This document shows, piece by piece, positions 13,701 to 48,416 of a stretch of DNA of 64,000 bases (positions within the stretch are counted from its first letter, which is position 1; each line of letters begins with the position of its first letter). Origin of the DNA: Saccostrea cucullata (taxonomy: Eukaryota). The position numbers and the translations under genes were made by a program. The notes under the pieces were generated by a model. It made no database searches and was not told where the DNA came from. It was given only the letters and a program-made list of their open reading frames with translations. The stretch is from NCBI RefSeq assembly GCF_032062105.1, contig NW_026935833.1:124001-188000 (forward strand), in the 5' to 3' direction.

Positions 13701-13851
13701 TACCAGTTACATGGTCATGTATGGTAGTTCTTGGCACAGAAAACTGTTGTGAGGCTTTCCTTATCGACATGCCAGACTTGACTGCAGCAACAGCGTTTTC
13801 GAGTTCTTTAACATCATAATTTTGGTATATGTTCTTTCTCTTTTTTGCCAT
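10276..13851 (-). pseudogene. Second pogo-like transposase (DD35D), frameshifted, split by the HINE at 10298-12075
   Basis: MAKKRKNIYQNY...AVKSGMSIRKASQQFSVPRTTI (psq HTH); NCDEKG; LILDSHRSH-x-LPPHTTALLQPLD with 35 residues between the 2nd and 3rd Asp. C-terminal KITSH.LLTSDEII parallels the first pogo (KTSHRLLTTEDVI). Confidence 0.88.
10298..12075 (+). mobile_element. Non-autonomous Helentron-type element (HINE) with ~167-bp tandem array
   Basis: 5' hairpin ggtcacctgagt-aa-actcaggtgacc, (cgt)n microsatellite, ~6-7 units of gtgaatttcatggccccagggtcaggggttctggtgttagggcggggctc, and a 3' subTIR ctcaggtgacc plus palindrome aggcacgtgggcct-cttgt. Inserted into the 3' end of the second pogo transposase. 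Confidence 0.82.
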
Positions 13852-16984: not shown

Positions 16985-19461
16985 GAGGGCGCAATTAGCA
17001 CTTCCGGCATTGTTGTTGAGAGGTAAACAACTGAACATTCGGCACATTAAATGGATGGCGATTTTCTGTTAGATGAAGTAGATTATAATTATCTTGTTTT
17101 ATTGTTTAGTGGGAAAATTTTCGAAGAATCAGAAGAAAATGACGAAAAGTTTGAAGGATCAAACCCCACAGTTATACATGTTAAATGCACACATATCGGA
17201 GAGAAAAGAAATCCACTACGGCAAGGAAATACTTTTTACTGTGGCAACTTTGAAAGATGGTCATATCGGGCAATATTTTTGTGATTTAACAGATCGTTTT
17301 ACTGTGTTCTTTCCATGTATAAATAGGTACACTCTGAGGAATACTGATCAGGTCCAGCACAACCTCTTGATTAAGCTATATAGCTTTATCTAGCTATATA
17401 GCTTGGTTGAGCTATTTAAAATAGCTTTATTAAGCTATTTGGAATATGACATATTGAAATAAAATTCTTAAAATTAAAAACAAGAGAGTCGCATCATGAG
17501 TACTTGTCAACAAGTTCACCCGTGCATAAAAAATACTCACTAAAATCAAGGTATAAAAGCGATGCGTGTGGGGCGCTCATCTTAATGAAAGGTTTGTTGT
17601 TGACAATGAAACGGTGGAGATTGGCAGATTAAGTGTTTAAGTGTAAAAAATAAACCATGAAAACTAACCCACTGGAGCATCATAGTTCAATTCCCTCCTG
17701 AGCGCTCTACACCGGATATGCTGTATTCAACGTAGTTACAGAAGAAACCCGAATAACGGTAACTTATCCGTCATCCTCTGGTAAAGTATGGAAACATAAT
17801 TTCATTATAAATGCATTTAATGAATCATTGGTGTGAAAGTTAAACTGGTAATCAATAAAGAAAGATTTTAATTTGACAAGCGGAATAAAACAGTCGTATA
17901 ATTTATGATTTTAGCACATAAAAGACAGAAAATACATTTTTTATATAACATGAATATTTTATTTGAGGGAGGGGGGGGGGAGAGGGGGTTTGGTGTTAGT
18001 ACAGAACATTTAATTATTTTTTGGGATAAAAATGCCAACTTGTAGCTGTAGACAACATACAACCTTTGCAAAAGATGAACCTTTTAAAATATATAGACTT
18101 TCTAGTAAAAAATACAAAATTTTAGTTGTTGAAGGTATCGTTGAAAATGGCCATCTGTGTAAAAGAGCAGTGTATTTATGTACAGCATGTGCTGCGTATA
18201 ATGAAAAAAACATAATTTCCAATGAAAAAAACATTCAAAATGAACTTGATCAAGTTATTTATTTGATTTAAACAAACAACAAATCTAAATGAGAATCTGA
18301 TGAAAGCTAGATATCATTGAGATGGTGGCCATCTCAAAGGGCCCCGCTTTTAGCAATGAACGTGAAAATGTAACATAGCTGAAAAGGGTTTATTTTGAAG
18401 GTTTTTGAGATTAAAGGGGACAAAAAGTATTACTCCCTGAAAAATAATACAATTAAAAAACTTTTAGAAATGTATCCTCTATGAAAAGTGTTGCATATCC
18501 CTATCATAATATACAGCTCAACGCACTTTGGTTTTTCGCACAAATTAAGGTTCACATTGTTGTAATTAAAATTACCATTTTCGAACTGCAGTACAAAGAT
18601 ATAACCCTACGTTATATTACATATGTAATGTTCAAGCATAGATGTCTTTTAAAATTATTATTTTAAGTTTCCAAAGTGGATGTTTTTAAGGGGAATTTAT
18701 ATGTAAATGGTACGATGTTTCGACTATACGATTCTACCATAGTTTTTAACAATTTTATAAAAAGAGCTTTCCTTGATATCATGTAGTTGAAATTTTGAAT
18801 TTTTTTTTCCCTTAAAGGTGAGTAGTTTTTAAAATTCTTTGTTCATTTACCATACTCCTCTTGGTTTTGATGAAATGTAGCGCCGAAAAGGGATAACATT
18901 GCAATAGGAAACCACACTAGAGGGAAGGATAATAAAGTATTGTTTATTTTTTTTCAGTAGTAAATTCCTTCTATGAAAAGGAAAATTCCTCTGCATTTAC
19001 GGTTTGAAAGGTTAGAATTTTGCAGAAGGATGAATCTCTCATGAGTCCAGATTTTAGAAGTTGACTCTGAAAATCCCACCTTTTTAACATACAAAGCAGT
19101 CAAACAGATGAAAAATACTATTATCACCCCGAGCTAAAGAGTCAAAGTGTACAGAAAATACAAGCTGGCAGTAGGTAAACTTTGTCCATGTCTACGTTTC
19201 TGCAAAGAGCTGTTGCTTTCAAAAGAATGTATAAAAAGACAATTGCAATTGACAAGAAACCACAAAAATTCAAATGAGAGTAGCTGTTATTCTTCAGCCA
19301 TGAAAATATCAAAGTTCTGCCAATTGATATGTTTGAATTATGTTTTAGTAAATGAAATACCCCCGGTAAAACTCAAATAATGTAAAAGAATACTTTTAAA
19401 ATGTATTTTGATATCTCGATACACAATATTACATCATAACAATGTGACCTTAATTTGTGCG

Positions 19462-20370
19462 AAAAACCATGTGAGCTTAAAAAGTGCGTTGAGCTGTATA
19501 TTGAAGGAAAATCACAAATGTTCCATATCCAGTCCATTTGTTTGAGGCTTAGTGGACTTAAGGGAAAGAAATTATGCAGCAAACAAAGACTTTAAAAAGA
19601 GAGGCTTTGACCTTGACCCTTGACCTAGAAACTTTGTTCAAGGTCACTGCACATTCACTGACCAAAGGCATTCTGTGAGTGAAGTATGAGCAACATGCTC
19701 CGAGCAAGTATTTTTCATATAATTTTGCTATGACCTTAACGTTCGACCTAGAAACATGGTTAAAGGTCACTGCATATCCTTTACCCAAGGGCACTCTGTT
19801 TCTGAAGTATGGGCCAGATTAGGCCAAGGAAAGTGAAAATATGCTCCAGACAGAAATTTAAACAGAAAGGCTATTTTTGAGCTTGACACTAGACCTTGAA
19901 ACTTACCTCAAGGTCACTGCACACCCTTTACCCAAAAGGCACTCTATGGGTGAAGTATGAGCCAGATTGGGCCAAGGGGAGATAAGATATGATCCGGACA
20001 AGGATTTTTCATATCATTCTGCTATGACCTTGACCTTTGACCTAGAAATATAGTTCAAGGTCATTGTACACTGCATACCCAAAGGCACTCCGTGGGTGAA
20101 GTATGAGCCAGATTGGGCCAAGGAGAGAGAAAATATAATCCGGACATTGATTTTTCATATCATTCTGCTATGACCTTGACCTTTGACCTAGAAACATGGT
20201 TCAAGGTCACTGCACACCGGTTACCCAAAGGCACTCTGTGGGTGAAGTATGAGCCAGATTGGGCCAAGGAGAGAGAAGATATGCTCTGGACAAGAGATCT
20301 CGGACGGACAGCTGGACGGACAGATCTAGACTGATCACTATATAGGGCGCCCGGCGAGCGGGGCCCTAAT
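19462..20370 (-). mobile_element. HINE-type element with ~146-bp tandem repeats (gaccttgacctttgacctag family)
   Basis: gaagtatgagccagattgggccaagg recurs at 146-bp spacing (19952, 20098, 20244); (ggac)n microsatellite; terminal hairpin tagggcgcccg...cggggccctaa. Confidence 0.7.
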
Positions 20371-21701
20371 TACTGAAGCCATTGACACTACCGAAAGCAA
20401 AAGAATGATAGGCCGATTTCAATGACAATACATTTAGTCAATACAAGTATGTTGATTTTTTAACATCTGCCACTATTGATACGTGGATATCTGGAAAACA
20501 AAAAACAAAAAAAACAGTGTCATATCTTCATTGTTTTTGTCATTATGTGGGAAAAATATGTCAGATTTATCATCTTCAGAAAAAACAATTGTGTTTCCTA
20601 TTGAACATTTGTACTCTCTTCTATCTTCCAACATAATCAGGCCATTTTCATTCAGTCTGAATCTTTTAACATATTTTATGTCAAATAGCAAAACAGTTTG
20701 TAACATGTATTCTTCCGCCCATCCTGCTGGAAGTTATACTTCTGTTTTGAAATGGATAGCACAGCATGGAACAACACCTCTCACCATTCCATTCCAGCAT
20801 GACGTGTCAACATTTGATAATAACCAAGTGTTAGCAAGGAACTGGAGGGTGCGCTATGACGCCAAAGCTATTCTGAGCTATGTCACGACAGTTGTCCATT
20901 TCTTCCCTAATCCAACTACCGATTTACAACTTGTCCATAATTTCTCTCCCAGACACTGGTTTTACAATATTCAAATATCAGAGAAATACAGTGCTATTTT
21001 AAAATTCATAAATTTATATGAAAATGTATTTAGATCACTTCGTGAAGATTTCATAGAAAGCAGGATACGTGTTTTGTTACAGCATCAGCATCCAGGACTA
21101 AATTATACACAGGACGTCGTTTCTGATCTTTTAAAAAACAAGAACAAGAAATTTTCTGATCATTCAAAGTCCCAGGTTGATGTGTATTCTTTTTTATCAC
21201 ATTCACATAGTAGCCCTCCGAAAATTCAGATGGGAAATCCAATATCGGTTAAACCGCGTTCCTTCAAATCTGTACAAGCTGTGCTAGAGAATTTAAAGTG
21301 CACTGCAGGGATCCCCAATCATAGACAGTGGAGTATAGTAGGTTGTGATGGGCTTCCCTTCCTTCTGTCTCACAGAACTATTAAAAAGATAACCCCCATC
21401 TTCAAGATTTATTCCTTCAAACTGGACTGGGGCATGTTGAAATTAATATGTCCACAGGTACTGTCTCTTTCGTGAAATAAAATTGAATGAATTTTATTAA
21501 ATTTTATACATATATAATTATATAAAATATAACAAAATTCATTCAATTTTATTACATATATTACAGCTGTCATAAAGCTATTATGATAAGTAATTGGGGG
21601 TAGATTTGGCAAAACTATTAGATTATAGATCACCAAAAGCACTGCAGTCCTGCCAACGATAACCACAAGGCCATGCATGCAGTTCATTGAAATTCTTCTT
21701 T

Positions 21702-22814
21702 TTAGCTCTACTGGTCAGAGACCAGAAGAGCTTATGCGATAGTAATGCGTCCGTCGTCCGTCCGTCTGTCTGTCTGTCTGTCTGTCTGTAAACAATTTTT
21801 CAAAATGCTACTCCTCCTACAGTTTTGGTCCGATTTCAATATAACTTGGCACACAAGTAGACTATATTAAGATACATAATTCTGTGCATCGGTTTTTGAT
21901 TTCATTGATCGGTGTTGCTGTGGTTACTAAAAATAGAAATTTCTGTGAAATTCTTTCAAAATGCTACTCCTCCTACAGTTTTGGTCCGATTTCAATATAA
22001 CTTTGCACACAAGTAGACTATATTAAGATACATAATTCTGTGCATCGGTTTTTGATTTCATTGATCGGTGTTGCTGTGGTTACTAGAAATAGAAATTTCT
22101 GTGAAATTCTTTCAAAATGCTACTCCTCCTACAGTTTTGGTCTGATTTTAATATAACTTGACACAAAAGTAGACTACACTAAGGTACATAATTCTGTGCA
22201 TCGGTTTTTGATTTCGATAAACTGTGTTGCCGTGGTTACTAAAAATAGAAATTTTTGTGAAATTCTTTCAAAATGCTACTCCTCCTACAGTCTTGGTCCG
22301 ATTTCAATATAACTTGGCACACAAGTAGACTACACTAAGATACATAATTCTGTGCATCGGTTTTTGATTTCAATGAACGGTGTTGCTGTGGTTACTAAAA
22401 ATAGAAATTTCTGTGAAATTCTTTCAAAATGCTACTCCTCCTACAGTTTTTGGTCTGATTTCAATATAACTTTGCACACAAGTAGACTACACTAAGATAC
22501 ATAATTCTGTGCATCGGTTTTTGATTTTGATGAACTGTGTTGCCATGGTTACTATAAATAGAAATTTCTGTGAAATTCTTTCAAAATGCTACTCTTTCTA
22601 TACTTTTGGTCCGATTTCATTATAACTTGGCACACAAGTAGACTATACTAAGATAACATAATTCTATGCATAGGTTTTTTGTTTGATAAGTGGCAAGGAT
22701 CACTTTTTTTTACTTATTACTGTTTTAAAGTCTCAAGTCCCAACTGCTACTTTTCTCTTCCTTTGTTTTAAGTATAAACCAGTAGAGCTACAGTCTCGAC
22801 AGAGACTTCTGGTT
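21702..22814 (+). mobile_element. HINE / CvA-Pearl-like element, 156-bp repeat family
   Basis: subTIR agctctactgg...ccagtagagct, (gtct)n, ~5.5 units of 156 bp, 3' hairpin agtctc-gaca-gagact. Confidence 0.88.
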
Positions 22815-24058
22815 TTAACAGGTCTGTTAAGAGAAGTGTTCATCATTTTAATAAAATAAACAAAATTAATATACATAAACATTTATTTTCTTTTTTTCAA
22901 ATAAATCTATACCTCTAAGCATTTCCTATCCATAGGGGGGTGAATTGTTGTTCCCCTGCATCTATCATTGCTAGGAAAAGGTAATGGAACCTTCTGGGAA
23001 AGGCTTTTACGCCTGGTGTAAAGACGTAAAGGATCCAAAGTACATGCTGGAGTCCATTTTCACGTATGTACTAGCAGTGTACATGTTCAGAGGTGGGATA
23101 AGACGTAATAACAGCAACGTCATTATGGCCTCCAGAATGAAGTTTTCTCCCTTAATTTTGGTGTGTCCAAAACAAGTACCAACAAATTGAAATGCTATGC
23201 ATCATTATGAGAGTACTAGTCTGTGCACCAACTGAAGTCCTCCAATTCATCCAGGAGCACGACTCCTTCTCTCGTAAGCTTAAGACAGCATGCCCTAACC
23301 TCAACTGCACAATAATGCAAAATGACGCACTTAAATACTAACTTTATTTCCTGCCTATCTTGTGAGACGAGATTTGATTGGTTTGATGGTGGGTGTAAAT
23401 TTCCCTACAGCCGACTTGATTAGTTAAAAAAATGTGACGTCACAAATAACGACGTCAACATGCATTAAATGCATGAAGAAAATATGCACAGTTTGAAACA
23501 CCCATTTTTGAACTAGGTTTTAAAAAAATGATTTCATTACATAACATTAATTAGTTATCCAGGTTTAATGAATGATGTACAGGGATTTGCTCCAGCATTT
23601 ATTAGTATTCTATACACCATGAAGGTGAACAATAAAGAATTTGTGCAATACGTCAATGCATGGGTAAAAACCCGTACACCCTTGAATGAACCGTGGATAG
23701 AATTAACATAAAATTTCTAACCACTTTTTCTTTTTGTTATCCTATGTAGGATATCTATATTTTTTCTGTTTCCTTGGGTTTAAGAGAATTTTTTCCCGAC
23801 CGTATAAATATTTAGAATCTGGAAATGAAAGCAAAGGAGAGGGTTGTGATTTTATATTGGAGGCCAAAAATAGACAGGCTAAAAGCTGGCTTCCCAGTGG
23901 TGCACCAAAGGAGAAACACTGGGTGCAATGTTGCAGAAACTGGATACACTAGAAGATGCAAGTATTTTACAAACATATTGGTATAATAAACATGAATAAA
24001 AGAAAAAAAAGTATTTAAAACATAGTAGGAACTTTTATTACAGACATGAAATAGTTGT

Positions 24059-27000
24059 TCATCTGTGTACAGGACACCTAAACTTTGTTTGCTTAACAAT
24101 ACTGTTTGACGAAAAATAAAACCCCATACATTCGTCATGGACCCAATACCCACACATGGCACGGTCACATCCCAATGTCCACGTGTCTGTGTGGTCAAAA
24201 AACATTGCAAGTGTCGGGTACTTTACTAGTAATTCTTTCAGTCTGCGTGCACTTGCTCTTGCATAACATCGTGCCAACCCTTCTCTTTTCTTTGAAATCT
24301 GATATCCATCTGATCTGTTTCCCTTTCCTCCTGATTCATTGTTAGTTTTAGAGGGGAGAAAAGTAGGTTGAGATGGAAAAGTAGGAGAGGGAGAGGAAAG
24401 TGAAGGTTCTGGGAAGGGTGCATTTGAGGAAAGTATGGGAGGTATTGACTGGGTAGAACAATGTGGGGTGGAGATAAGTTCAGCAGAGGTAGAAGACGAG
24501 CAAGTCGTAGTAACAGAGGAAGAGGAGGATATAGAATTTGTTCTGACAGGGGGTGGTGCGCTAGAAACGTTAGAGGGGGAAATTTTATGAATCGATGAAT
24601 GTGCTGAAATATATCATGAATGCTTGTCTTTAACGAAAAAAAAGGCGGAAAAAATTCATTCAACCAATTCTTTAAATTAATAAATATCATTGAATGAGAT
24701 TTGTGTATTCCATTATATACTAACATCCATAGGGGCTTGTCTTCCGGATTGTTAAATGTAATATAAATTTTAAAAATTTTGAATCTTCTTTAAATACACT
24801 TAACAGTTGTTAAAATAAAGATCCTGACACTTTCAGGCAAGAAAAACCATGTTTAGAAAAGACGTACCACACCTATATACATAAACTCTATAAGGGACGC
24901 AAGCTCCCATCTTGGAAAAAATACCCCCGCCCACTTCAGCGCCTATTTTTGGACTCTAAACCATTAATTTATTTCGGTATCATGGCTCTGTCCCCTTACA
25001 GTGATGATTTTCCTAAATGTTGATGCGATTGTCAGTCGTGAACACGCGTTTAATCAACAGTAAACGGATACAATTTCTTCGATTTGAGCTCATCTCGCTG
25101 AATCGACCCAAAAAGAACGGAAGTTGACATGGTTGCATGGTAACGACGCAAGGGCGATAATCGTGGTATAGCATATAGCGCGCTTTTAAATTATGTAACA
25201 AATTACTTATATGTTAAATGAGTCTTCCCAATGACAATTTAGCCTGTGAAACCAAACTTTAGCCCGTATTTATCATTTTTCACTGTCTTTTTCTTGTCGG
25301 TAAACATTTTTCTCCGCGAAGCTGGAAATCCTTGGGTGTTACCATTCGCTTTCGATTACCCTCTGAGTTTTCCCTATACAATCATTATCTGCCCATGCAA
25401 TTTTGTCAACTTCCGATGAGCTCAAATCGAAGAAATTGTATCCGTTTACTGTTGATTAAACGCGTGTTCACGACTGACAATCGCATCAACATTTAGGAAA
25501 ATCATCACTGTAGGGGACAGAGCCATGATACCGAAATAAATTAATGGTTTAGAGTCCAGAAATAGGCGCTGAAGTGGGCGGGGGTATTTTTTCCAAGATG
25601 GGAGCTTGCGTCCCTCATAGAGTTTATGTATATAGGTGTGGTACGTCTTTTTTAAACGTGGTTTTTCTTGCCTGAAAGTGTCAGGATCTTTATTTTAACA
25701 ACTTTTAAGTGTATTTTAAGAAGATTCAAAATTTTAAAAATTTATTTTACATTTAACAATCCGGAAGACAAGCCCCTATACTAACATCTTCAAAGAAAGG
25801 CGTGGCATACGTGGACATTTTTCCAGACGGTGATTTAACAATAACTAATATTTCACTTTTACTTGTTAGATGGAGTTCTTTAGCCTGTTGAACAATAAAT
25901 TAAGAATATATGATACAGTATATATAAACAAAACATATTGCATTGTAGATAAAAAAGAACATGAAATCCCAAATTAACATCAGGAACTCCAGTGAAGAAT
26001 TGATTTTTCACACCAATCTTGATAATGAGACATTTCAGTGGCGTGCAAAATTAAGATCATCCAAATATCTCTCCAATCCCTTCTCCTCCAACGATCATAC
26101 TTCTCTGTGCAACAAATAAAGAACTAGATAAAGAACTAGATAAAGAACTAGTAAATTTTTCCCAGAAATGCAAAACAACCGGCAACATTATATTCAAGAA
26201 GTTTCTAAAAATAATTCTGTCTAAATATCAATAGGGCGAGAAAGCGGAAGTGCGAGATTTGGCGTGAATTGAACCTCTGGAGATAAACAAATCCGCGCAT
26301 ATACATAGGCAATATAGATTTCTTGTTTTTAGTGATACAGAATGATACAGAATGGCATTGTCCATTCTGTATTGGTTGAATTTTGTATCCGGGACTAAAA
26401 AGCTACACCAGAAGTCTGAAGTGGCTGTGAAATCTGAACACGTACTTAAATTCCTGTACGATCCTGGGCTGAGACACGTCCAGGGAAGGGTGCAAGCCAG
26501 CATGAGGGATAGAAGCTATCATATTAACGTATGTATCAAATTGTTTTATATTTTATAATAATAATATATAAGTACATAAACGACATTATTTTCAATATTT
26601 CGTGTTGCATTTAGATCACACTTGGGGATAATTACACTGTGGAAGACAGTATCTGTGACTGTGTTAATGGCCAGGATAAGTGTCACCACAAAGCTTCTCT
26701 TCTGTTATATGGGTATGCATTTTTTTAATACAATAAAAAATATAAATGATTTTTTCCTTCATTTTATCACAGGTACTTGGGTCGTGGTTTATAAATATTT
26801 ATAATGTACCTTATTGATATGTAAAATACTTTTTTTACATATCAATAAGGTACATTATAAATATTTATAAACCACGACCCAAGTACCTGTGCATTTTATA
26901 AATGTTATTCATCTTAATTTAGGTACAAGAATGTTAGTAAGACGGATGTAAGAGAATCTTGGATAAAACACCCAAAGAGTGGACCCCCAAAGAAAACGAT

Positions 27001-30000
27001 GACCATGGAAAAGCTGAATGACCTTGGTCGATTTTCAGGTCTTGATTTGAAAAAAAAAATGTTGAAACATGTTTTGTTCTTTGTTTAATTGAAAATGTTT
27101 ATACATGTTTCCTTATTTTGTTATGTGACCAGACTAACAAAATATTTTCATTCAGTTTTTGTTGAAATGAAGTTGAGCACTATCAGACTTTCCTGCATAT
27201 TGAAAGCAAAGTGTACGAGATATCCATTGAAAGTGTTTGCATATACTGTATATTGAGAAAATGTTAAAGTATTGTTATTTGATAGACTAATTAAGTATAA
27301 CCCATTTTATTATTAAAATCAAACCATAACTACTGTATCATTTTAGATTAATAAAATATACTCATTTCAATCATTCATACATTTATAATTTATTAATTCT
27401 ATTCAAATTGTTAGCCATGCAATGGATAGTTTCTGAAGAACCCCCTGCTCCCAAAGTGGATGTTCCATGCGTAGAGGATCTTCTGTTAACGGAAGGTTAC
27501 ACAAGTGCGACCAATAAAGTGCAGTGGCTTAAAACAAACCTCCGTGTATCGAAGCAGCAGACAGAACAAGTAGGACATTTATATAAGTATACTCTAGAAT
27601 TATTATGAATTATAAATACTTTGAATCAGTCCCCACCCATTCTTTATTATTTTTTTTTGGGGGGGGGGGTGTACTTTGATTTTATTCCTTTCTTTTAGTC
27701 TCTGTTGAAAATACGGATTGGCCAGATCACCTAATCATTATTTTAAATGTAAAATGAATCACTTCCTTAAGATATTTTAAGATTGAAACAGTAATGAATA
27801 TGTCTAGATGTCAAGTGTATAATGCACACATCAGTAAATACAAACCCATTTTGAAAAATGTGGGTCAGAGTATACAAATCAATTTTTTAATAATGATGGC
27901 ACAACACTCATATTTCAACTGATTAACTTTCAAGAGAGGGGATTACATTTTGTAAATATTGTACTTGACATGTCTTCAAAAAGAAAAAAAAAATATATGT
28001 GACATTAAAAATAAATATTAAATTGAAAATTATGAATATCATCCATATATCATTTTTACACAAAATATTTTTTAAACTATATTAATACATGTAGTACCAA
28101 CTATATTATTTTGCAGGTGGCACAAATGACATGTGGTCAACGAACAAATTATCTTTGGGCTTTGGTTAAAAAAAATCGATTAACGGCATCAAATTTTGGT
28201 GTGGTACTATCGGCAATAAGAAGACAGAGGTAGTACTTTTTTTCTCATCCAAAAGTAAAGTTAACGTATCTTATACAGGTATATTACCTTGTTCAAGTTA
28301 AGTATATAATTTACTTTCAACTGAGGAACTATTGATATATTTTTCAGATTCCCACCATCATTATATAAGCAAATCTTTTCCTCATACAATCTCTCGACAA
28401 AGGATGCCATATTATGGGGGATCAGTAATGAGTCAACTGCTAGGACAAAATACTGTTCATTTGGAGATGCTATTGTAGAAGAAACTGGTAAGTGCATGTG
28501 CTTATGTGTAATTTATAATATAGCCCACAGGTTTCAAACATCTTAAAGGACAAGAATTAATTTAAACAATTTTAAATATTGGAATTGAACGTGAAAAACA
28601 CCAAACATATTTATTACAGGTGTATGGCTGCATGAGAGTGGCATATTGGGAGCCAGCCCTGATGGAATTATTCGACGCGCAGCGACACACAATTACAACT
28701 ACCAGGATGTAGAATTAACAGACCTACTTGAGTGCATGGCTGTTAAACCAGAAGTTTTGGAGGTGAAGTGCCCATTTAGTGCAAGGAATATGTCAATTCC
28801 CGAGGACATAGAATCTGTCAAAGACTTTTGCTTGGGTAGGTTTTAGTTTTAAGGTACAATTTCCGCAAAATCTGAAATCTTGTTTAAGGAATGGTACATA
28901 TTTAATACAAAGTTTATTATTTCATGTCTCAGACTACCAAATATATGAAGGAAGGAAGTTCTACAAGTTAAAGGAGGGCCACAGATATTACGATCAGGTG
29001 CAAGGACAGCTGCACATACTTAACAGGTCATCATGTGACTTTGTAGTGTGGACTACGAAAGACATAGCTATTGTGAGAATTCTTCAGGACAGCACCTGGA
29101 CCCCAAATATGTCAAAACTCATCGATTTTTACTTTTGTAAAATAATCCCAAATATTGTTCAGGACTGACATTTGGTTAGTATGACATCATATAGGCAATT
29201 TTGTATATTTGTACTGATATACGGTAGGTTTTTTATGAGTGACTTAAATTGAAGTTTTTGATTAGTGATTACCAGTAATCCCAATTTATACACATACAAA
29301 TATGTTATATGTTTATGTAATAATACAGTGAGTTGTAGGGCAATGTCAGACTTGTATACCTGCTACATTGAATATTTTGGGACTTGACTTGAACCGCTTA
29401 TTTTCAGTAATCATGAGGCACTATTTATAAGGAATCTTATTGTTATACATATGTACTCGGGGTAAAGCTGGAAACCAACAACAGAAGTTATACTTTGTTT
29501 TCTGAATTATTTCTGAAAGTTTTCTCATCATTACACATAATCATGAATAATTATTTCTTGAGTTTTATATTGTATTGATTGATTTTTGCTTGTAGTGTAT
29601 TTCAGGTTGTTCTTAGTATTTCTTACCACTTAAAAATACACAATATAATTTTTTAATACAGTGAAAGATTTCTTTCAGAACTGTAGAAGAAATAAGTTAA
29701 GTATTCTGTTCAAATGTCTTTTTAAATATATATATATCATAAACTGTGTAATAAATTTTTGACTGTATATGCTTTTTTTTATCTAGTCGAATACATGTAA
29801 GGCCATGCAAAGTTAATTACTTGGTTCTCAGGCCTTTTTTCAAGAAATATGATGAGGGAGGGAGGCATTTTTTTTTTCTTTTTTATTGCCCCCAAAACAT
29901 GACGAGGCAGCTTTTTACATTGTACAAATCCTCAAAAAATGATGAGGGAGGTGATTTGGTGTTTATATTTTATTGATTTAGCATTAGAAAGGGTCAATGA

Positions 30001-33000
30001 GGCACCCTTGGAAGAGATGAGGGAGGGCCTGAGAACCAAGAAATTAATTTTTTTTTTGCCTAATATGCAAGTAAACAAGAGACGAAGTGATGAAAAAATA
30101 CATGTAAATTTTATGTACAATATGGAACTACATTTTTTGGTATTTCACATATTCCATGTAAATATTGGACATCATTTTGTCAAAGAATTATTTCATAACA
30201 ATTGTACTGTTCCATTATCCAAAGAGACTAATGACTCAATGTATTAAAAAAAATGGATAAAGAATAGAAATTTACTATAACATATGTAAAATTTGCTAGC
30301 TTTCATGATATTATAGAATTTAAAATATACATGCTTTTTTGCAAAAAATAATGATAAATGGAGTATTTTCAAAGAATCTTTGTAAAGGTCAATGACAACA
30401 TACTATTTACCTTAAAATGCTCTTTTCAAAGTTGTTTACAAGATTTATGATACATATAATACAACCTTTATTTTCCTGGCACTTATACATAGCACTCTAC
30501 TTGAAGCAAGGTTGGGTTTGTCAAAACTTTGTTACACTTACATTTACAATATCAATTTAGGGTATGAATATCATAAAAGAAATATATGTTAAAGCTGAAC
30601 ACAATTACAAATACTTGGAACCTCTCATGAAATAAATTACATTTGCTCCACCTCTACATTCTTATATCATATATTAATGAGTGTCTAAATCTTGAGCCTG
30701 AATGTAATTATCTGCAATCTCTGCAATCATTGGATCTTGAAAATTGACTAGTATAGAACATACTTGAAAAATTTTCGTGCTTAAATGTCTAAACTTGTGA
30801 GGAATGTGAGATAATATCTCAAAGTTCTTAATTCTTTCATTTACCCGCTCTACATGGATACGAGATCTGGCAATTTTTCTGCACAGTTGCACTTCGGCAG
30901 GAGTGTATTGTCCTTTGTCTTTCAAGAAAGGAGGGATGTTGAGATGCACACCTGCTGGAAGGAGAGAGTGAATAGTAAAACCTTTATCAGCCAGAATCAT
31001 ATCCCCTGGTTTCAACTGGCAGAGCATTTTACTGTGTTCAACAATGGCCACATCAGATGTACTTCCTGGGTAAAGTTTGCTTACATATACCACAGCTCCG
31101 TTAGGGGCAACGCCTGTAACAGATTTTACGGTGTGCCTGTTTTTATATGAGCTATAAGTTTGAGACTGTGCTAACATATCCTGCCCTGGAACGTCTTGGG
31201 TCACCTCTGTCGCATCGATCACAAGACGGCAACAATTAAAATCACCAAAACTTGTCGGCATAGAGGACTTGCACTTTAAGAGGGAGGGAATGTTATTTTC
31301 AATCATGCCCTCAAAGAACACCTCATGCAAAGCAAAAATATGTGTAACCACAATATTTTGCACTGTTGTCTTACTTGTATTGAACCTCTCAGCTAAATCT
31401 AAATTGGGAGAGTTTAGCTTCAATTTCATCAGTGTCATTAATAACTGGTCAGTTCTTGAAATCACTGCTGGTGTCCAGTTGTTGACATATGTTAATGGAA
31501 ATCTCTGAATAGTTGAGTCCACTACTCTAAACATGTCTGCTTTCAAGGAGGTGTACATCAGCATCTAATAAAATATGAATTTATGGAATGTAGTTGTTCT
31601 AGTTTGTTATAAAGGTAAAATAATTTCTCATACTGTATATAATTGCATAGAAAACGGTTGTATTTTTTAAGGTTGAATTATTTAGAGGGATTGACCTGCA
31701 AAAATCATTTTTTTTTATAACTCACGTATAACATGGTATAAGTTGGATGAAGAGTTTTGGACCAAAGTTTAACTCCCAAAAATCAATCTACTTATAGGTG
31801 AGTTTATACAGTATATGCGATTTGAACAAGGACTTATTGTTGTTTAACATCACTCTCATGAATTTTTCACTTATATGGAGATGCCTTCACTTGCCAGTGC
31901 AGGGCTACAAATTCTGACTATACTCGGCACTTATGGCCTTTGAGCAGTGAGGGATGTTTTTCATGCCAGCACTTACTGGGACCTCTGTTTTTACAGTCTC
32001 ATCTGAAGGACTGGTCTCCATCCCGCAATGGGATTTGAACCCGGGAGGTAAGGATCAACTCCTTATTTCACAATGCTCTAACCACTTCACAGAGGGAGCT
32101 ACATTGGAACAAATAATGTATCAGTCAGTAAAAAAATGGATACCTTCTTTTCATCATTGATGATCTGGCTTATGGTGAAAGGTTGTTTCCTAGTCTTAAG
32201 AATAGCTATTTCTGATGTCAGCTTGTCAATTTGTTGTTCCATTTCCTTCAAAAACCATATAAGTGTGTAACTGTTTTTTTTACAACATTGTACACAAAAC
32301 AGAGTTTAAGTACTACAATACTAAATACATGTACTACTGAAATTTTTATACTCACTTGGATTTGTTTTAATAAATTTGACTCTTTATCGCAGTAGGTGCT
32401 TGTAACGGTCCCGTGTCGCAGTAGATGCTGGTCATGGTCAAAACCCTCACTAAATGATTGAATTGGTTGTGCAGCTTCTGTCTCTTCCACCATAACCGCA
32501 TTTTTTTCTCCCTGGTTTACAGATGGGCTCTGTTTGCATTGTCTGTATGTGTTACATAATTTGCTTATAACTAACTACTTCAAATTTTTACATATATTCT
32601 GTCAGATTTTTTTAACTTCATAAATTTATATTAGCTGTTGATAGAAAATATTTTGTTATTGAATAAATTGTATGGTAAAATGATGTCTCAAAATAATGAC
32701 ACAAAAATATTCAAAACATACCTTGAAATAGCATTAGGGTCTCCAAAGTCAAAATACTGCCCTTGATTCCAAGGGAAGATGGTTGGTCCATTTTCTTTTT
32801 TTCCATCTTTGAAATGACAGCTGCATATTCTGTCAGCTGCAGTTACTGTCCTATCTTGTCTCCTGAATTAAATAAATTATATTCTAATTATACGTGTAAA
32901 TATAATCTAGACAAAGATTTGATGTCCGAGTACTATTATTTTCAATTTCATAGCTCTTGTAGATTCACCTCCCCTCTCCACCCGTGCTCTCGTGGGTGAT

Positions 33001-33898
33001 AATTCGGGATAACTTTAAGTTGACTATAAAAGACCACTGTTACAATGAATCAGAATATATTAAAAAGTGAAATACAACACTGATAACTCTGTATTCTTAA
33101 GCTGAATTCAATTTCATGCATTAGGTAACATGTTATAGGCGTACGATTGAAAGGACAGTGTATAACCCGACATTCCTCTGTTATATTTTGAGAAGTGTTT
33201 TTTAAATAAAACATCATACCTGCAAAGTTTTTTCCCATATCTTTATTGATTTCTTTGGGAACCTGAAGAAGCTGCAAGTTTCCCGCAAGCTTTGGTGGTT
33301 ACAGCTCGCCACAAATCAAAGCATTTTTCACGAGGTGAAACCGGCAATATTGAACCGAAAGCACATGTTCGTAATGTTTATCTCCAGCAGCCAAACCGGA
33401 AGTGACGCACAAACGAGACTTTCTTGCCCTATTTCTCTTGAACCTATTTTCTTTACAAGTCTTGAACGTTCTCACTTTCATTCTATCGAAAGTAGAACAA
33501 AAGCAGAAATAGCAGCCAAGATGGAGGAGCAGATTGAAAAACTGCTTGATTTGGATTTTGAAGCTGGTATGCAAATTTCATAATTGTTGCGTTTTTAAAA
33601 TAAAGATATACATACGCATGCATATCTAAAATAAATCATTTTTTTATTGTTAAAAAAGGAGAAGACAGGAGGAGAACGCAATGGAAGAGAGATATAAAGA
33701 ATGGTGGGGAAAAATGTACATTAATTTCTACAAAGAATTACTTGAAGTTGTAGAAAGTTCCCAAGATGTCATGAAGGAAGAAGGTTCATTAGATTTTCAT
33801 ACCTTTTTTAAGAGTGTATTTTTCCTCTTGTACACTGAGTCGTGTCTTTTTTTAGCATCCTCAATATAAGTACTTGGTGCTGGTCCACCTCTTGCCAT
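24059..33898 (-). CDS. Spliced MADS-box + S/T/P-rich linker + PHD-like finger gene (exons 33898-33803, 25884-~25782, ~24603-24059); possibly decayed
   Basis: Exon 1 MARGGPAPSTYIEDAKKRHDSVYKRKNTLLKK joins exon 2 AKELHLTSKSEILVIVKSPSGKMSTYATPFFEDV through a phase-0 GT-AG intron, giving the MADS pattern IE..R....KR..L.KKA.EL.......IV.S..GK...Y. Exon 3 is an open S/T/P-rich frame ending WTLGCDRAMCGYWVHDECMG...FRCPVH*. The exon 2 donor is uncertain and the first PHD CxxC pair appears eroded. Confidence 0.72.
24728..25779. mobile_element. Foldback/MITE with ~366-bp near-perfect TIRs
   Basis: 24729-25094 is the reverse complement of 25415-25779 with few mismatches, around a 320-bp non-coding spacer. 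TSD (a)ctaacatc, 8-9 bp, at 24719-24727 and 25780-25788 (hAT- or MULE-type). Confidence 0.9.
26352..29168 (+). CDS. SWIM zinc finger + YqaJ (lambda-exonuclease-like) protein, 8 exons, ~415 aa
   Basis: Exons approx. 26352-26528, 26615-26712, 26923-27038, 27415-27569, 28117-28229, 28348-28487, 28620-28835, 28933-29168; all GT-AG with compatible phases and no stops. Motifs CDCVNGQDKCHH (SWIM), RLTASNFG, WGISNE, LGASPDG, LEVKCPF, YYDQVQGQL, CDFVVWT. Confidence 0.88.
26768..26891. mobile_element. 124-bp palindromic MITE (hAT-type)
   Basis: 59-bp perfect inverted arms (cacaggtacttgggtcg...) around a 6-nt loop. 8-bp TSD cattttat at 26760-26767 and 26892-26899. Lies in intron 2 of the YqaJ gene. Confidence 0.9.
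29801..30060. mobile_element. Tourist-like (PIF/Harbinger) MITE
   Basis: GGC...GCC termini, imperfect ~34-bp TIR containing cttggttctcaggcc / ggcctgagaaccaag, and a TAA TSD on both sides. Confidence 0.72.
31633..31811. mobile_element. Degenerate Tc1/mariner-type MITE in a transposase intron
   Basis: Ends tactgtata (31631) and tatacagta (31805-31813), consistent with a TA TSD plus short TIR. Confidence 0.4.
31838..32086 (-). mobile_element. Diverged Deu/Nin-like tRNA SINE copy
   Basis: Reverse-complement similarity to 1683-2025 (gtctcatctgaaggac, gagcagtgagggat, ctcggcact), with a B-box-like gggttcaaatccc. Confidence 0.7.
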
Positions 33899-35631
33899 GC
33901 CCCTCTTTTTTTGCCCTTTGTTGTTTTTCCCAGGGTTTATTTTACTATTCTGTATGACATTACAACAGCATATATTATATAATTTAGTTAATTTTTAATA
34001 AAATTAAAAATTGGAACAAGGGGGTAGGGGTAGTGTCAAATTATCTTAATTTTCATAAGTATCGTGAATATAAATGATGACCGTCAAGCGAAAACCACCC
34101 TTATGTGCATTATGACGTTATTGAGAAAACGAGCGCTAAAGTTGACGTCATGAATGTTTGCCGAATTTTGCAAATAAATGCAGTGTTAAACGCATCATTA
34201 ATTATAATATTTCTTCATACAGTAAATGCATATACTAAACAACATAATGAGTAGTCGTAAGTATAATTATCAAAGTCCACTGTTTAGTATGAAAAAAATG
34301 ATTTACAGGAAACTGAATGTGAAAATCCTTTGAAGTAGCGAATACCACAATCTTCGCCTTTATTTTCATTTTATAGGAAAATTTTCTTTTTACTTCTAAA
34401 ACACGAATATGGAGGAGAAATTGCATATTATCTTATGACTCGAGCAGCAACAAAATGGACATAGATCTACTCTTATTGAACATTATTTTTGTCACTATTT
34501 ATTGATATTTTTCTATATTTATGATAAAAAGCATAGAAAACCTAAACAAAGTGTAAAGCCAAGTCGTTGGATTTCATACAAAGGTGTGCAAGTTTATTGC
34601 AAACTAAACAGCGTTATGTACCAAAAATCAAAAACAAGCTTGAAGAAATGGTGGGGCGGGTCACAGAAATATAATTTATCAGTATATAATTAAGGTTGGA
34701 TAACAAAGCCCTCAATACAATTTCACCGGAAAAATATACTTGACTATGACAAATGAAAAAGTTCGTTTTGTTTTGCTATGAAAAAGTTCATTTTGTTTTG
34801 CTATGAAAAAGTTCGTTTTGTTTTTTTTTTCTTATTCCTTGTCAAGACCCCCCCCCCCCTAAAAAAGAAATGAAAAATAAATCGCTTCCTATATGATATT
34901 TTTTAATACGTTGGAATAATAATGAAACATAATGAATCCCTCGATCAGTTAAAGACGAATGCAGCCTACATGTTTTAGGAAAAATTGAAAATTATCATAA
35001 AAATGAAGTCATTTAATCTCTAAATTATGTTGTATCCTAGTACTAAATGGTTTGGGGTGGGTATAAGCAACTTGTACTTTGATAAGGTTATAGAAATTTA
35101 ATTATTAAATTGATTCAAATAAAACTTGAAACTGATGAAATATTTAGCATGTGGCTAATATACGTAACTCTATAACTAAGCTATTAAATTTTTAAAAGAG
35201 GGCAGCCAGAGAAAAAAAAATAACTTACCTGAGAAAAGGTTTACAAGCAAAATGTCCAAACTCGAAATCCTATTTCGTGGGGGGGGGGGGGGGGGGAGGA
35301 GAATAAGCCAGCAGGAAGCAGACATGCAGTGGGATTAACACCATATTCAAGGCTGTTTTTACAACCCGTTGCACCCCTCTCAACAGAATTACGACAGGTG
35401 CATTATGCACAGGACTATTCTTATGAGCTTTCGATTCCGCTCCACGTGCATGTACATGTATGACAAGTTGACCTGCAGTTAGCTGCAGAACTGTAACTCT
35501 CCGAAATATTTTGACAGACCGGGCTGTAAAAATATTTTTTTCGGAGAGCTACAGTTATGCAGCTAACATGCAGTATTTTCGGAGTACTTATTTGGCCATG
35601 TATGGTATACTTAGTACATGTACATATAAAA

Positions 35632-35652
35632 CTCTCTCCTTCTATCTCTCTC

Positions 35653-35702
<50 letters not shown>
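35632..35702. repeat. (CT)n microsatellite
   Basis: More than 20 consecutive CT dinucleotides plus an imperfect 5' extension. Confidence 0.95.
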
Positions 35703-35705
<3 letters not shown>

Positions 35706-36764
35706 AGGTTTCAATGATTTTTGCACAAATTGTCTCACGTCACTCTCCATCCGCATTTATGTCCAGAATTTATGAGCGAGGGTCGTATATTTTGGTCATT
35801 GTTTTCGAAGGTGTATTTCAGGGAAACTTTTAGATTCTATAAGCGAAATCAGGTGTTATTTTAAAGTGTCCATGGGACAACGCTTCATGTATCATTTCTT
35901 TTCAATATAAAAACTAATGTCACGCCAGGTGCACGAAACGCATGCTTAAAAGAGCAAGCAGCCATTACCCTTTCCCTTTAAATTTTACGTTTTAAAAACC
36001 TTATCCTGTGCGGAATTTTCATCCTGATAAATATTTTTCTTTTATTAAAAAAAATATGGACCCTATGGCCACACTGTAAAATTACGAATTCACACCTGTT
36101 AATGCATTTTTATATGCATAACTGAAACAAATACGCATGTAGGTAATGTTTTAATTGTCTTAATTTTAGAAAAATTATTGTCTACAATTAAGCAGGAAAA
36201 ACATATAGTCAATTATTTTCAAATAATTAATTCTTTACCTAAAAGAGACATTTATTCATCATGGAGACTTGCTATCAGTCAAAAATTTTACTTCCTTTGC
36301 AAGCCCTGTACATTGATAAAAGATGGTGGATGTTGGAATCCCTTTAATAAGTAAAATAAGTACATATGTATATAGAGACGGAGATAATTTTTTCGATTTG
36401 TGAACTTGCTTTCCACCACGAGGCGCGACAAATGCTTATTTTCAGAACATAAGAAAGGAGGGGGGCTGTCCTTCCAATTACTGGAAGTTCAGTACCAAAT
36501 TTAAAGTTTTAGTGGGTATAAATTATATTGCAGCAATGTGTATTATATGCATCTTTAATGCAGTGTCAGAGATGACAATTGCTTTGATAAAGCTCTTCAA
36601 GCCATTTGAGTGAGATTAATACAAAGATACAATCGAATCTGTTCCTCAAACTGCTCCACAAAAGAATAAATTGATTTGGAAAAAAACCCACAAAGACAGA
36701 AAGTATTTTCGACGAACACCTTGATTTAAATTATGTGTGAAATAATATACTTTCTCTCTCTTCG

Positions 36765-36967
36765 CGGGTTCGAATCCCGACGTGGAGATCGGTCCTTCGG
36801 ATGAAACCCTATAAACCAAGTTCCCGTGTTGCAGTAAGCGCTGGCACGAAAAGATCCCTACCTGCTCGATGGCCCTGAGTGCTGAGTATAGGACAAAATT
36901 TTTCTCCACCGGAAAGCGGTGGCAGCACTCATATGAAGATATGAGTGAAACATTCTCGAGAGGGACA
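36765..36967 (+). mobile_element. 5'-truncated Deu/Nin-like SINE copy
   Basis: B box gggttcgaatccc, ggtccttcggatgaaacc...aaaccaag, tggccctgagtgc, and atatgagtgaaacattctcgagagggac, all matching the 1683-2025 SINE. Confidence 0.75.
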
Positions 36968-38099
36968 TTTCTCTGGAAAATGATAGAACCGTTTGTCATC
37001 AGAATGCCCCTTATTAGCAGACATAATTTCCGTCTTCCGAATTTATTTAAATTCGTATACATGAGACACAGGAAAGTTTTTCTGTGGCCTTATAAATTTA
37101 GATATCCACAGCGTTCATCTGTTATCAATTCGCAACAGTTACTTTCATTAATATGTCGACTCGACATACCATGATCATGAAATTGTTCAAATTGTTCAAT
37201 CATAAAATGACGAGAACAACTTTCTGAAACAAATGAGCTTTCAAACTATCAATCTAATCTGAACTGTGTACATGTAGGTGTCTGTTTTTTAAAGGGGGAG
37301 GGGGGGTACATAAAAACCTGATATTTCTTCTATAATGCTAAAATTATCGATCATAAAAGGTGACAATAACAATGTAATTAAATAAAAATCACTTATGTAA
37401 TGTCATTTGTTGTCCGAGGTGATTTTTCTTGTGGAGTTTTTACAATGGTAATGTGAGATCAACGAAATTGACGTTGTCCGATAAAACACGGCGTCATAAC
37501 GAAGAATTTGTATTTTTTATTTGAAAAAATTAACTAATGTTTAGTCTTTGAACAACATCATGTTATATATCATTTAAAAGAGGAGAAAATTATCTATCAG
37601 GATCAATAAACAACTCAAAATGTCAAAATTTTCACTTAAGGGTGGTTTTTGCTTGACGGTCATCAAATAAGTGTTTTATTTTTTTGCTTTAATATCATAT
37701 ATTTTTCAATCCCTTCCGTTCTTTAATAGGCAAAGTAATTGCAGAAAATTAATGCGTTACAAAGACAATAATTTGAATACAACTGTGCTTCCACAGATTC
37801 TCAGCCGGAAGATGAAGATCTGCCTGATTCTGTATCAACGCTTTAGTATTGATTGTGCATTTCCTGTATTGGCGACTAGGACTTCCAAAGCACATGTACT
37901 TCAAATTGTGAGTGTTGTCATGGATTTTACGACTATATTTCGATACTTTTCATGGCAGTTTTGTAAACTCTGCACAAGAAACACTTTATGAAATGGATAA
38001 AATTTTTATGAAGGCAATGATGGATTTTTAAATTATCGCTGCTTAATACTGTATTACGTCATAAAGAAAAATATTTATACTTACCATTATGCGATGTTT

Positions 38100-39350
38100 T
38101 TTAGCTCTACTGGTCAGAGACCAGAAGAGCTTATGCGATAGTAATGCGTCCGGCGTCCGTCCGTCTGTCTGTCTGTCCGTCTGTCTGTAAACAATTTTTC
38201 AAAATGCTACTCCTCCTACAGTTTTGGTCTGATTTCAATATAACTTGGCACACAAGTAGACTACACTAAGATACATAATTCTGTGTATCGGTTTTTGATT
38301 TCGATGAACGGTGTTGCCGTGGTTACTAAAAATAGAAATTTCTGTGAAATTCTTTCAAAATGCTACTCCTCCTACAGTTTTGGTCTGATTTCAGTATAAC
38401 TTGGCACACAAGTAGAATACACTAAGATACATAATTCTGTATATTGGTTTTTGATTTCGATGAACGGTGTTGCCGTGGTTACTAAATATAGAAATTTCTG
38501 TGAAATTCTTTCAAAATGCTACTCCTCTTACAGTTTTGGTCTGATTTCAATATAACTTGGCACACAAGTAGACTACACTAAGATACATAATTCTGTGTAT
38601 CGGTTTTTGATTTCGATGAACGGTGTTGCCGTGGTTACTAAAAATAGAAATTTCTGTGAAATTCTTTCAAAATGCTACTCCTCCTACAGTTTTAGTCTGA
38701 TTTCAATATAACTTGGCACACAAGTAGACTACACTAAGATACACAATTCTGTGTATCGGTTTTTGATTATGATGAACGGTGTTGCTGTGGTTACTAAAAA
38801 TAGAAATTTCTGTGAAATTCTTTCAAAATGCTACTCCTTCTACAGTTTTGGTCTGATTTCAATATAACTTGGCACACAAGTAGACTACAATAAGATACAT
38901 AATTCTGTGTATCAGTATTTGACTTCGATGAACGGTGTTGCCGTGGTTACTAAAAATAGAAATTTCTGTGAAATTCTTTCAAAATGCTACTCCTTCTACA
39001 GTTTTAGTCTGATTTCAATATAACTTGGCACACAAGTAGACTACAATAAGATACATAATTCTGTTTATCGGTTTTTGATTTCGATGAACGGTGTTGCCAT
39101 GGTTACTAAAAATAGAAATGTCTTTTAAATACATTCAAAATGCTACTCCAAATACAATTTTAGTCTGATTATAATATAAATGTGGCATGCAAGTAGACTG
39201 CATTAAGAACATAAAGAGACTTAATCAAGGATCATTATTCTATTTATTGCTGTTGAAAAGTTTCAATTTCCAACTGCTTAAGTACTTTTCTCTTCCTTTT
39301 CTATAAGTACAAACCAGTAGAGCTTCAGTCTCTACAGAGACTTCTGGTCT
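38100..39350 (+). mobile_element. HINE / CvA-Pearl-like element with ~6.5 x 156-bp tandem units
   Basis: 5' hairpin/subTIR agctctactggtc...gaccagaagagct, (gtct)n, units starting at 38201, 38357, 38513..., 3' subTIR ccagtagagct plus hairpin agtctc-taca-gagact; T-rich flanks. Confidence 0.9.
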
Positions 39351-39801
39351 TTTTGTGCACTTGTCGATTTTGTTTAAACTTCGTTGAATACAATTGAAAT
39401 TTTCATTAAGATCAGCGCCCCACACGCAATTTTATGCTTGTGTATTTTTTGCCCTGGCAAGGAGAAAACAGAACTTAACAGAAGAACCAAAGAACTTACA
39501 TACAATGTGTGATCTGGCTGAAGAGGAAACTACTCAAACAGGAAAACAGAATTCATACCATGTATACATTTATTTTATACCACCTATTTGGCAACAGATT
39601 TCTTGCAGAAGAAAAATATCTCATAAATGCAAACAGTGCCATGCCTTGTTGTCTTAAATACATTAACTTGCTTGAAAAGGTGTCAGTGGAGAGACTACAA
39701 TATTGTAATCATTATTTCTCCTATCTACAATAGGTGTGCCATTGAACATTGTCAAAGAATGTAAATAAATGGTCAGACTGTAGGAAGAAGTAGCTAGTGC
39801 T

Positions 39802-39852
39802 CAGCATTACAACAGTAATATGGGAGGTGTTGACAAATCTAACCAAATGCTG
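39802..39852 (+). pseudogene. piggyBac transposase fragment
   Basis: QHYNSNMGGVDKSNQML matches the piggyBac YNxxMGGVDxxDQ catalytic motif; only ~17 codons recognisable. Confidence 0.5.
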
Positions 39853-39978
39853 AACAAGCATCTTTTCTGCATCAAGTCGGTTCTTAGCATTTTCGTTCAA
39901 TAATTCATATAAGTTTGGGATTTTTTTTTAGATTTAAAAAAAAAATTTCTGTAAGCATTTTCTACTTCAAGCAAATAA

Positions 39979-41766: not shown

Positions 41767-42626
41767 TCCGATTCGAATCCGGGTCATTTCTCCCCAGTAC
41801 CTGCTCCGCCTAGGTCATTTCTCTTCTAGGTCATTTCCCTCCATTACCCAGGTCATTTCTCTCCACAACCCAGGTCATTTCACTCCAACATGAAAATTGT
41901 TTGACTTATACTAGTATAATAAATGTAATTATAACAAGTTCTATTGTTATCATAATTATTGAACTTAACGTTTAACATGCATCCTTTACTGTTATTTTAT
42001 TTATTTATTTTTATTTATTTATATTTTTTTAATTAATTTATTTATTTAATTATATATTTATTAATTAATTATTTATTTATTTCAGTCATTCAACTAACAC
42101 ATTCCTTTTTTATGTTGTTTACAAATTTACCAGTATTCACTAGGTCTTAACTATAAATTTAATGGTCGATTTCAACATGGTGTTGTAAATATTTGCCGAT
42201 ATATATTCCACGGCAAATCTTAATGTCGTTTCATTTATTTAACAATTTCAAGATGGAATTCTCAGTTTTTAAAAGAGTTCCAAAGAGATTGCAATGAATG
42301 GTGAAAAAGGTTTTTTATCCTTTATAAAATAAAAATTAAACCACCTCTCGCAAATAAAAGCATGCATGGGTATTGATTTTCTTCCGTAAATTAAAGTAAT
42401 GCATTTATGAATTCATTTATTCATTTATTTGTTTGTAAATTTTTTTTTGTTGTTGTTTAAAGTATTCTTTAATTCGTTCCTAAATTCATATTTTTGATTA
42501 ATTAATTATTTATCAATTAACGTATTCATTTATTTTCTTTTTCTTTCTTTCTTTCTAATGGAATATAAAATAACTAACATTGAAATGCGATGCGATTTTT
42601 ATTTATTTATTTTATTTATTTATTAA

Positions 42627-48402: not shown

Positions 48403-48416
48403 AAAAAAAAACAACC

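Follow-up and report, generated by a model that had tools for sequence, protein, structure and literature searches.

The subject of this paper is a 64,000-nucleotide stretch of the Saccostrea cucullata genome (contig NW_026935833.1, positions 124,001 to 188,000), which we call the window and in which positions are counted from the first letter. It holds a decayed copy of a DNA transposon that carries, besides its transposase gene, a gene combining a MADS box with a PHD finger (the MADS-PHD gene). From one terminal inverted repeat (TIR) the copy is collinear with an intact 6183-bp copy of S. echinata (17349 to 39428, identity 76-85%); compared with the latter it contains six nested insertions and has lost one outer end. 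Its parts are as follows.

17349..17590 (+): intact carrier TIR, beginning with CAGGTCCAGCAC, with an array of CTAT/ATAG half-sites at nt 25-90 and the TATA-like TATAAAAG close to its inner end; the adjoining CTGAT probably represents the target duplication.
18032..23940 (+): exons for the 5' part and core of the transposase (18032-18286, 20369-21718, 22936-23278 and 23803-23940).
24059..24603 (-): MADS-PHD exon 3, with an S/T/P-rich linker, a basic patch and the PHD finger, within a transposase intron.
24729..25779 (no strand): miniature inverted-repeat transposable element (MITE) at the exon-2 donor, with 268-nt arms, 97% complementary, and a 10-bp duplication (9/10 match).
25786..25884 (-): MADS-PHD exon 2, which encodes the rest of the MADS box (PF00319 23-48) and has phase-0 boundaries on either side.
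25949..26232 (+): 5' part of the transposase C-terminal exon, with 4 stops, within MADS intron 1; the ISL2EU insertion splits this exon.
26233..33430 (no strand): ISL2EU insertion with an AT duplication, a DDE_Tnp_4/HTH_Tnp_4 transposase on the minus strand and a YqaJ gene on the plus strand; an unrelated passenger.
33431..33800 (+): transposase C-terminal exons (33431-33577 and about 33637-33800), within MADS intron 1.
33803..33949 (-): MADS-PHD exon 1, the NPGKNxKGQ motif and the first half of the MADS box (PF00319 1-22), within the last transposase intron.
34079..37665 (no strand): 3.6-kb insertion with short inverted ends, not found in other copies.
37797..37846 (+): last transposase exon, with an acidic tail and a TAG stop, within MADS intron 0; the homologous joint is seen in RNA for the copy on contig C8196.
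38085..38087 (-): start codon mini-exon of the MADS-PHD gene, ATG followed by GTAAGT.
38096..39348 (no strand): 156-bp tandem-repeat element, inserted into the MADS 5' leader.
39397..39439 (-): inner remnant of the second TIR, whose outer end was not found within the window.

A sequence-only reading of the window had joined 33898-33803 to the segment from 25884 onward, both on the minus strand, into a MADS domain. Both segments translate as quoted there, and the intron between them has a GTATGA donor, an acceptor ending in CAACAG and phase 0. The window exons were searched singly against Pfam, while the joined form was represented by database gene models. Exon 1 matches PF00319 at model positions 1-22 (E 3.8e-4) and exon 2 at positions 23-48 (E 1.4e-3), so that the two halves abut exactly and follow the model end to end. 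The methionine that was taken as the start of the protein proved to be internal and is absent at this place from most copies. The frame of exon 1 is open upstream of it, up to a phase-0 acceptor at 33949, and the start lies in the mini-exon at 38087. This ATG-GT mini-exon is conserved directly inside the TIR and the same start is used by the scallop RefSeq model. The suggestion that 7.2 kb of the intron is ISL2EU, leaving an ancestral intron of about 0.7 kb, was borne out, as removal of 26233-33430 gives a MADS intron 1 of about 718 bp; the DDE_Tnp_4 transposase, YqaJ gene and AT duplication that identify ISL2EU are all present. ISL2EU was also considered as the carrier of the MADS-PHD gene and rejected: no other copy contains it, and it interrupts an exon of the true transposase gene. 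It is a later insertion.

Exon 3 had been read as ending in a PHD-like C-terminus. This part stood, since PHD models are matched by the window exon (PHD_NSD E 4.5e-5, PHD E 6.7e-4), but the open frame that had been quoted is a mosaic across frameshifts and the window encodes no MADS-PHD protein. Compared with the intact S. echinata copy, exon 3 has frameshifting indels at ~24581 (-1), 24289 (+2), 24201 (-1) and 24172 (-4). The phase-0 splice between exons 2 and 3 runs out of frame to a stop ahead of the PHD, and the first CxxC, which supplies the first two zinc ligands, lies in another frame. Other splice phases that would restore the frame find no support, since this splice is in phase 0 in each of the four intact copies. 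About 15 stops (tblastn alignments to the intact P0006) and three insertions interrupt the transposase; its 5' and core exons contain stops, frameshifts, the insertion 18301-20375 and the 156-bp tandem element 21699-22815. MADS exons 1 and 2 remain open, with a ratio of nonsynonymous to synonymous substitution rates (dN/dS) of 0.10 against S. echinata, which reflects selection that predates the death of the copy. The window copy is a pseudogene, and a functional or domesticated gene at this place is ruled out by the exon-3 frameshifts and the broken transposase. Within it, the 10-bp duplication of the MITE at 24729-25779 copies the exon-2 splice donor, and by the length of this duplication the MITE is Mutator-like. 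A further copy, on contig C14394 (L038-L040), is 93-97% identical to that of the window and has the same truncated TIR and flank (39348-41997); it is without ISL2EU and with a different tandem insertion, and is an allele or a segmental duplicate.

In homologues, the MADS-PHD protein has about 220-320 amino acids and consists of the methionine mini-exon, the NPGKNxKGQ motif, the MADS box, a disordered linker, which is S/T/P-rich and poorly conserved, and the PHD finger. Full-length homologues score 47.8 (P0042), 44.3 (P0083) and 34.3 bits (P0052) with PF00319, where the cut-off is 26. The PHD of intact copies is a C4-H-C2-H zinc-ligand variant and reaches 28 bits with PF00628. The junctions of the gene are conserved phase-0 sites in every copy examined, and in each of the other genomes covered the exons lie side by side with the same intron between them. 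The same exon joints are used by four independent gene models (XP_062577088.1, XP_021363721.1, CAC5411459.1 and XP_022108939.1), and exons 1 and 2 are already joined in the short-contig open reading frames (ORFs) P0051 and P0068, which are known from ORFs only. The scallop homologue was modelled as a monomer and folds as MADS plus PHD, with the MADS domain (helix-strand-strand-helix) at residues 30-97 and the PHD at 152-214; a fold search returned MEF2 (Z 6.5), SRF (Z 5.6) and PHD fingers (Z 5.0-5.6). When exon 3 or the scallop protein served as query, word-based searches recovered almost no homologues, and a feature search of the Atlas gave no usable match. Among the gene models, oyster XP_062577088.1 is fused to an unrelated 5' part and scallop XP_021363721.1 is named 'BPTF-like'. 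Two other proteins from Logan contigs may be mentioned here: P0060 has the NPGK motif and a MADS box, but its C-terminus is formed by another, unnamed domain instead of the PHD (its Atlas neighbours are unnamed arthropod and mollusc clusters), and P0073 is a 713-amino acid protein with two divergent MADS boxes.

That a divergent MADS-PHD protein is carried by a DNA transposon, as had been proposed, is supported by the other copies, and there is very little doubt that the element is autonomous, moves by cut-and-paste and has MADS-PHD as the second of its two genes. TIRs of 49-572 nt starting with CAGGT, together with exact 5-bp target duplications of the pattern NTWAN, were found in 11 elements from five species; in two old copies (C10814 and Mercenaria L047) the flanking duplications do not match. 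In S. cucullata the copies are 5.7-8.8 kb long and are bounded by TIRs of 190-250 nt that open with CAGGTCCAGC, with the duplications TTAAA, GTAAT, TTAGT and TTTAT. The preference for T at position 2 and A at position 4 of the target holds in 20 of 22 symmetrised sites. Exons 1 and 3 are multi-copy in the S. cucullata genome, where the opposite-strand ORF at 20483, which belongs to the transposase, has more than 100 matches, many of them beside MADS-PHD exons. At least 37 loci match the exon-1 profile. At least 22 of these have a transposase match within 20 kb, a lower bound since 67 of 602 candidates were scored, and all 22 pairs are convergent, with no other orientation. Two other exon-1 loci lie between TIRs of the family and two at contig ends.

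Could this be an ordinary host gene that gathered transposon insertions? Annotations do treat some copies as host genes ('BPTF-like', 'MADS-box domain-containing'), and 15 of the 37 exon-1 loci have no listed transposase nearby. Yet the gene is multi-copy, non-syntenic, tied to a single transposase and bracketed by TIRs and duplications, and the host SRF and a probable host MEF2 exist separately. For the family this explanation is refuted and we give it almost no probability, although single domesticated copies, for example in starfish, may exist.

The two genes of the element are interleaved on opposite strands. Each TIR points one gene inward, and the transposase gene covers nearly the whole distance between the two TIRs. 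MADS-PHD exons 3 and 2 lie in antisense within its fifth intron; the following transposase exons sit in MADS intron 1, MADS exon 1 sits in the last transposase intron and the last transposase exon in MADS intron 0. This arrangement is seen in transcripts on the transposase side, because an RNA contig on the C8196 copy has two minus-strand GT-AG joints, one of which skips the entire MADS exon 1. It can be added that in RefSeq the transposase is annotated as two separate genes, divided at the intron with the antisense MADS-PHD exons.

The transposase model from Pinctada (predicted local distance difference test score 85) shows an RNase H fold with a helical insertion. Candidate catalytic residues in P0018 numbering are D239 and D417, both conserved in 24/24 sequences, and E630 (16/18), which would form the DDE triad; H445 is invariant. 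The best structural match is the P element transposase (6P5A; Z 13.1, 355 residues, root-mean-square deviation 6.5), followed by Hermes, integrases and ISCth4. However, identity to the P element is 9%, its THAP and GTP-binding domains were not detected in the carrier transposase, and the P element duplication is 8 bp, compared with 5 bp here.

DUF6589 (PF20231), which we take to be the Academ transposase, is weakly matched in Pfam by 11 of 24 transposase homologues (best E 2.6e-7), and in the Atlas the closest structure belongs to a fungal DUF6589 cluster (template-modelling score 0.56). Academ and the carrier have in common a large DDE transposase with xDN, GCDG/GD, GxGH and DxxxE motifs. The carrier may be a distant Academ relative. 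On the other hand, the duplication is 5 bp and not 3-4 bp as in AcademX or 9-10 bp as in AcademH (PMC10045372), and the second gene is MADS-PHD where a nuclease (X) or helicase (H) would be expected. No Pfam match to a nuclease or helicase was found in element ORFs or full transposase models, and the two genes fill the elements of 5.7-6.2 kb. Among the bivalve consensus entries covered from the supplement of PMC10294476, Academ-1 has TAG ends in place of CAGGT, and in the part of that library that was compared the TIR words of our family were not found at element ends. The DUF6589 matches of S. cucullata itself are separate loci from the MADS-PHD carrier.

Two-gene elements with a borrowed DNA-binding domain are known from PIF/Harbinger, in which the second gene has a Myb/SANT domain of transcription factor type and the Myb protein binds both the TIRs and the transposase (PMC9179366). 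The carrier differs from Harbinger in its unrelated transposase (not DDE_Tnp_4), its duplication, its MADS and PHD in place of Myb and its interleaved genes. RAG-like elements have a 5-bp duplication and a second gene that faces the transposase, both as in the carrier. The RAG-like ProtoRAG element has RAG1L and, as second gene, RAG2L (PMC4411706); RAG-like, TransibSU and ProtoRAG elements share with the carrier CA termini and a second gene with a C-terminal PHD. Here the ends are CAGGT and not CAC, MADS stands in place of Kelch, and the transposase matches RAG1/Transib weakly (Z 6.0-6.5 against 13.1 for P). The carrier probably resembles the Harbinger and RAG-like two-gene elements in its working and is a member of neither.

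The source of the MADS part can be approached through the host genes. In searches of the PDB, SRF/MCM1 come out ahead of MEF2 with the profile of either MADS exon, and the fold search on the scallop model puts MEF2 marginally above SRF. The host SRF of this oyster was located at C4807:17730-17989 and C23453:94910-95169 by an exact match to back-translated YTTFSKRKTGI. It has a 116-bp intron in the MADS box, after GIMKK, at the same codon and phase as the transposon MADS intron. Probable host MEF2 exons are at C23005:1000873 and 1047897, 47 kb apart, and their exon start differs from that of SRF. By profile ranks and the common intron, the MADS part appears closer to SRF (type I) than to MEF2. 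Because of the shared intron codon and phase, capture from a genomic SRF is most likely, as the simplest origin. Fold, profile rank and intron unite the carrier MADS with SRF/MCM1, from which it differs in being highly divergent and multi-copy, in its NPGKNxKGQ N-terminus, in an arm arginine that is mostly replaced and in its C-terminal PHD. Intronless PF00319 matches (model 1-36/39; frames of 126-525 amino acids) lie on S. cucullata contigs C13325:8343, C1240:7369 and C15692:38445, each convergent with a more distant transposase homologue 3.5-4 kb away; these loci appear to represent a sister group with an intronless MADS gene.

Elements with CAGGT ends and 5-bp duplications are present in S. 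echinata, Pinctada (two families), Haliotis and Mizuhopecten. Three S. echinata copies are 98.8-99.6% identical and lie at different sites with different duplications. Argopecten and a further animal assembly have the same exon order, while in Mercenaria the two genes face each other and the intron-1 interleaving is absent. From protein records only, MADS plus PHD proteins are known in Mytilus coruscus, Acanthaster planci and the rotifer Didymodactylos. In Haliotis, L049 9192-21987 contains at least two nested copies of the family; their CAGGT TIRs differ, and the two MADS-PHD genes present are oppositely oriented. Between oyster families dN/dS is 0.10-0.33 on the MADS and PHD exons where dS is measurable (dS is often saturated), which indicates that these exons are under purifying selection. 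The transposases of bivalves and the gastropod are 26-39% identical, and the position and introns of the MADS-PHD gene are fixed among them. These data bear on whether the protein is a captured passenger or a host modulator, for example a heterodimer partner of host SRF or MEF2, with no role in mobility. MADS domains do heterodimerise and an origin from host SRF is indicated, but passengers decay, whereas this gene is under purifying selection and keeps its place and introns from bivalves to a gastropod; we regard such a role as very improbable.

What, then, could a MADS-PHD protein do for a transposon? The outer 100 nt of the TIRs contain alternating CTAT/ATAG half-sites. ATAG-N10-CTAT occurs 28 times in 12 TIRs where 1.0 is expected, with a maximum of 5 in 500 shuffles, although the TIRs are related and not independent. 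In oyster TIRs the half-sites form GC-TATATA-GC, a CArG-like A/T core with changed outer bases. In the PHD, a tryptophan stands before 'xGC' in 17 of 18 sequences and another two residues before the zinc-binding histidine in 16 of 18, at the methyl-lysine cage positions of BPTF and ING2. We suggest, at about an even chance, that MADS-PHD is a transposition cofactor that binds both the end palindromes and chromatin. The MADS domain would dimerise, then bind and bend the array of A/T-rich palindromes found within the outer 100 bp of each TIR, and the PHD finger would grip histone H3 tails, probably with methylated K4. In this way the protein may assemble the ends with the transposase and tether the complex to open chromatin, which would combine the role of the Harbinger Myb protein with that of the RAG2 PHD.

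Several observations weigh against such a cofactor. The canonical CArG box (CC-W6-GG) occurs in no TIR examined, nor does a conserved MEF2 box. The CTAT-to-ATAG spacer varies (0, 1, 5) whereas ATAG-N10-CTAT is fixed, and the fixed motif could equally well be a site for the N-terminal Cys/His domain of the transposase. The Haliotis TIR is without the half-site array though its element has a MADS-PHD gene. In the PHD, oyster copies lack an aromatic residue at the third cage position, ahead of the first Cys, and other cage positions vary. Co-divergence of the two genes is not detectable beyond oysters (Mantel r 0.07, p 0.44). No read crosses a MADS-gene junction in four RNA runs, and the three polyA runs, with 13-24 reads each, have no MADS junction among them.

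The position of the arrays also fits a protein that acts outside the transposition complex, as a transcriptional self-regulator or anti-silencing factor, which would bind the TIR arrays upstream of the element's inward promoters and, by means of its PHD, keep these active or limit them. MADS proteins are transcription factors, both start codons lie directly inside identical TIRs, the TATA-like TATAAAAG is 120-180 nt downstream of the palindrome array, and the full antisense overlap of two genes calls for coordinated expression. Against this, no activation or repression domain was recognised, the S/T/P-rich linker is poorly conserved, and polyA reads are near zero in the three runs. We consider this role possible but on the unlikely side. 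The strong NTWAN preference and the kept PHD cage residues would also suit an adaptor on the target side only, with the MADS domain on genomic CArG-like sites, the PHD on methylated H3K4 and the element ends unbound; such an adaptor is improbable, as the transposase itself normally determines a target preference of 5 bp. The cofactor that binds both ends and chromatin is the role we prefer, and the young intact copies of S. echinata (99% identical) make it testable, together with the control of the interleaved antisense genes.

The MADS genes of animals are generally assigned to two lineages, SRF and MEF2. For MADS boxes in animal transposons we found no description in the literature; Repbase and Dfam lay outside this comparison and are the main risk to novelty. 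We tentatively propose, with slightly less than even confidence, that the carrier may belong to a lineage not described before, perhaps at the rank of a superfamily, marked by CAGGT ends and 5-bp duplications, which would have captured SRF at an early stage of animal evolution and would need its interleaved MADS-PHD gene. It would then represent a third, mobile class of animal MADS and an independent RAG2-like cofactor. Divergent MADS genes that are transposon parts number in the dozens per oyster genome and occur across molluscs; the host-gene names that they now bear may distort transcription-factor counts. Here a transposon most likely took a host transcription-factor domain, intron included, and fused it to a chromatin reader, which is the reverse of the usual direction.

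The remaining features of the window are repeats. A Helitron-like fragment (39693-41997; DUF6570, E 2.5e-13) lies just past the broken TIR. Elements with 156-bp tandem arrays occur in both orientations at 21699-22815, 38096-39348, 47833-48935 and 780-1565, and further tandem arrays of 166-168 bp at 10.5-12 kb, 16-17 kb and 42.7-44.2 kb. A direct repeat, 98% identical and 1014 bp apart, was found at 13399-14712 in a GC-richer ORF region.

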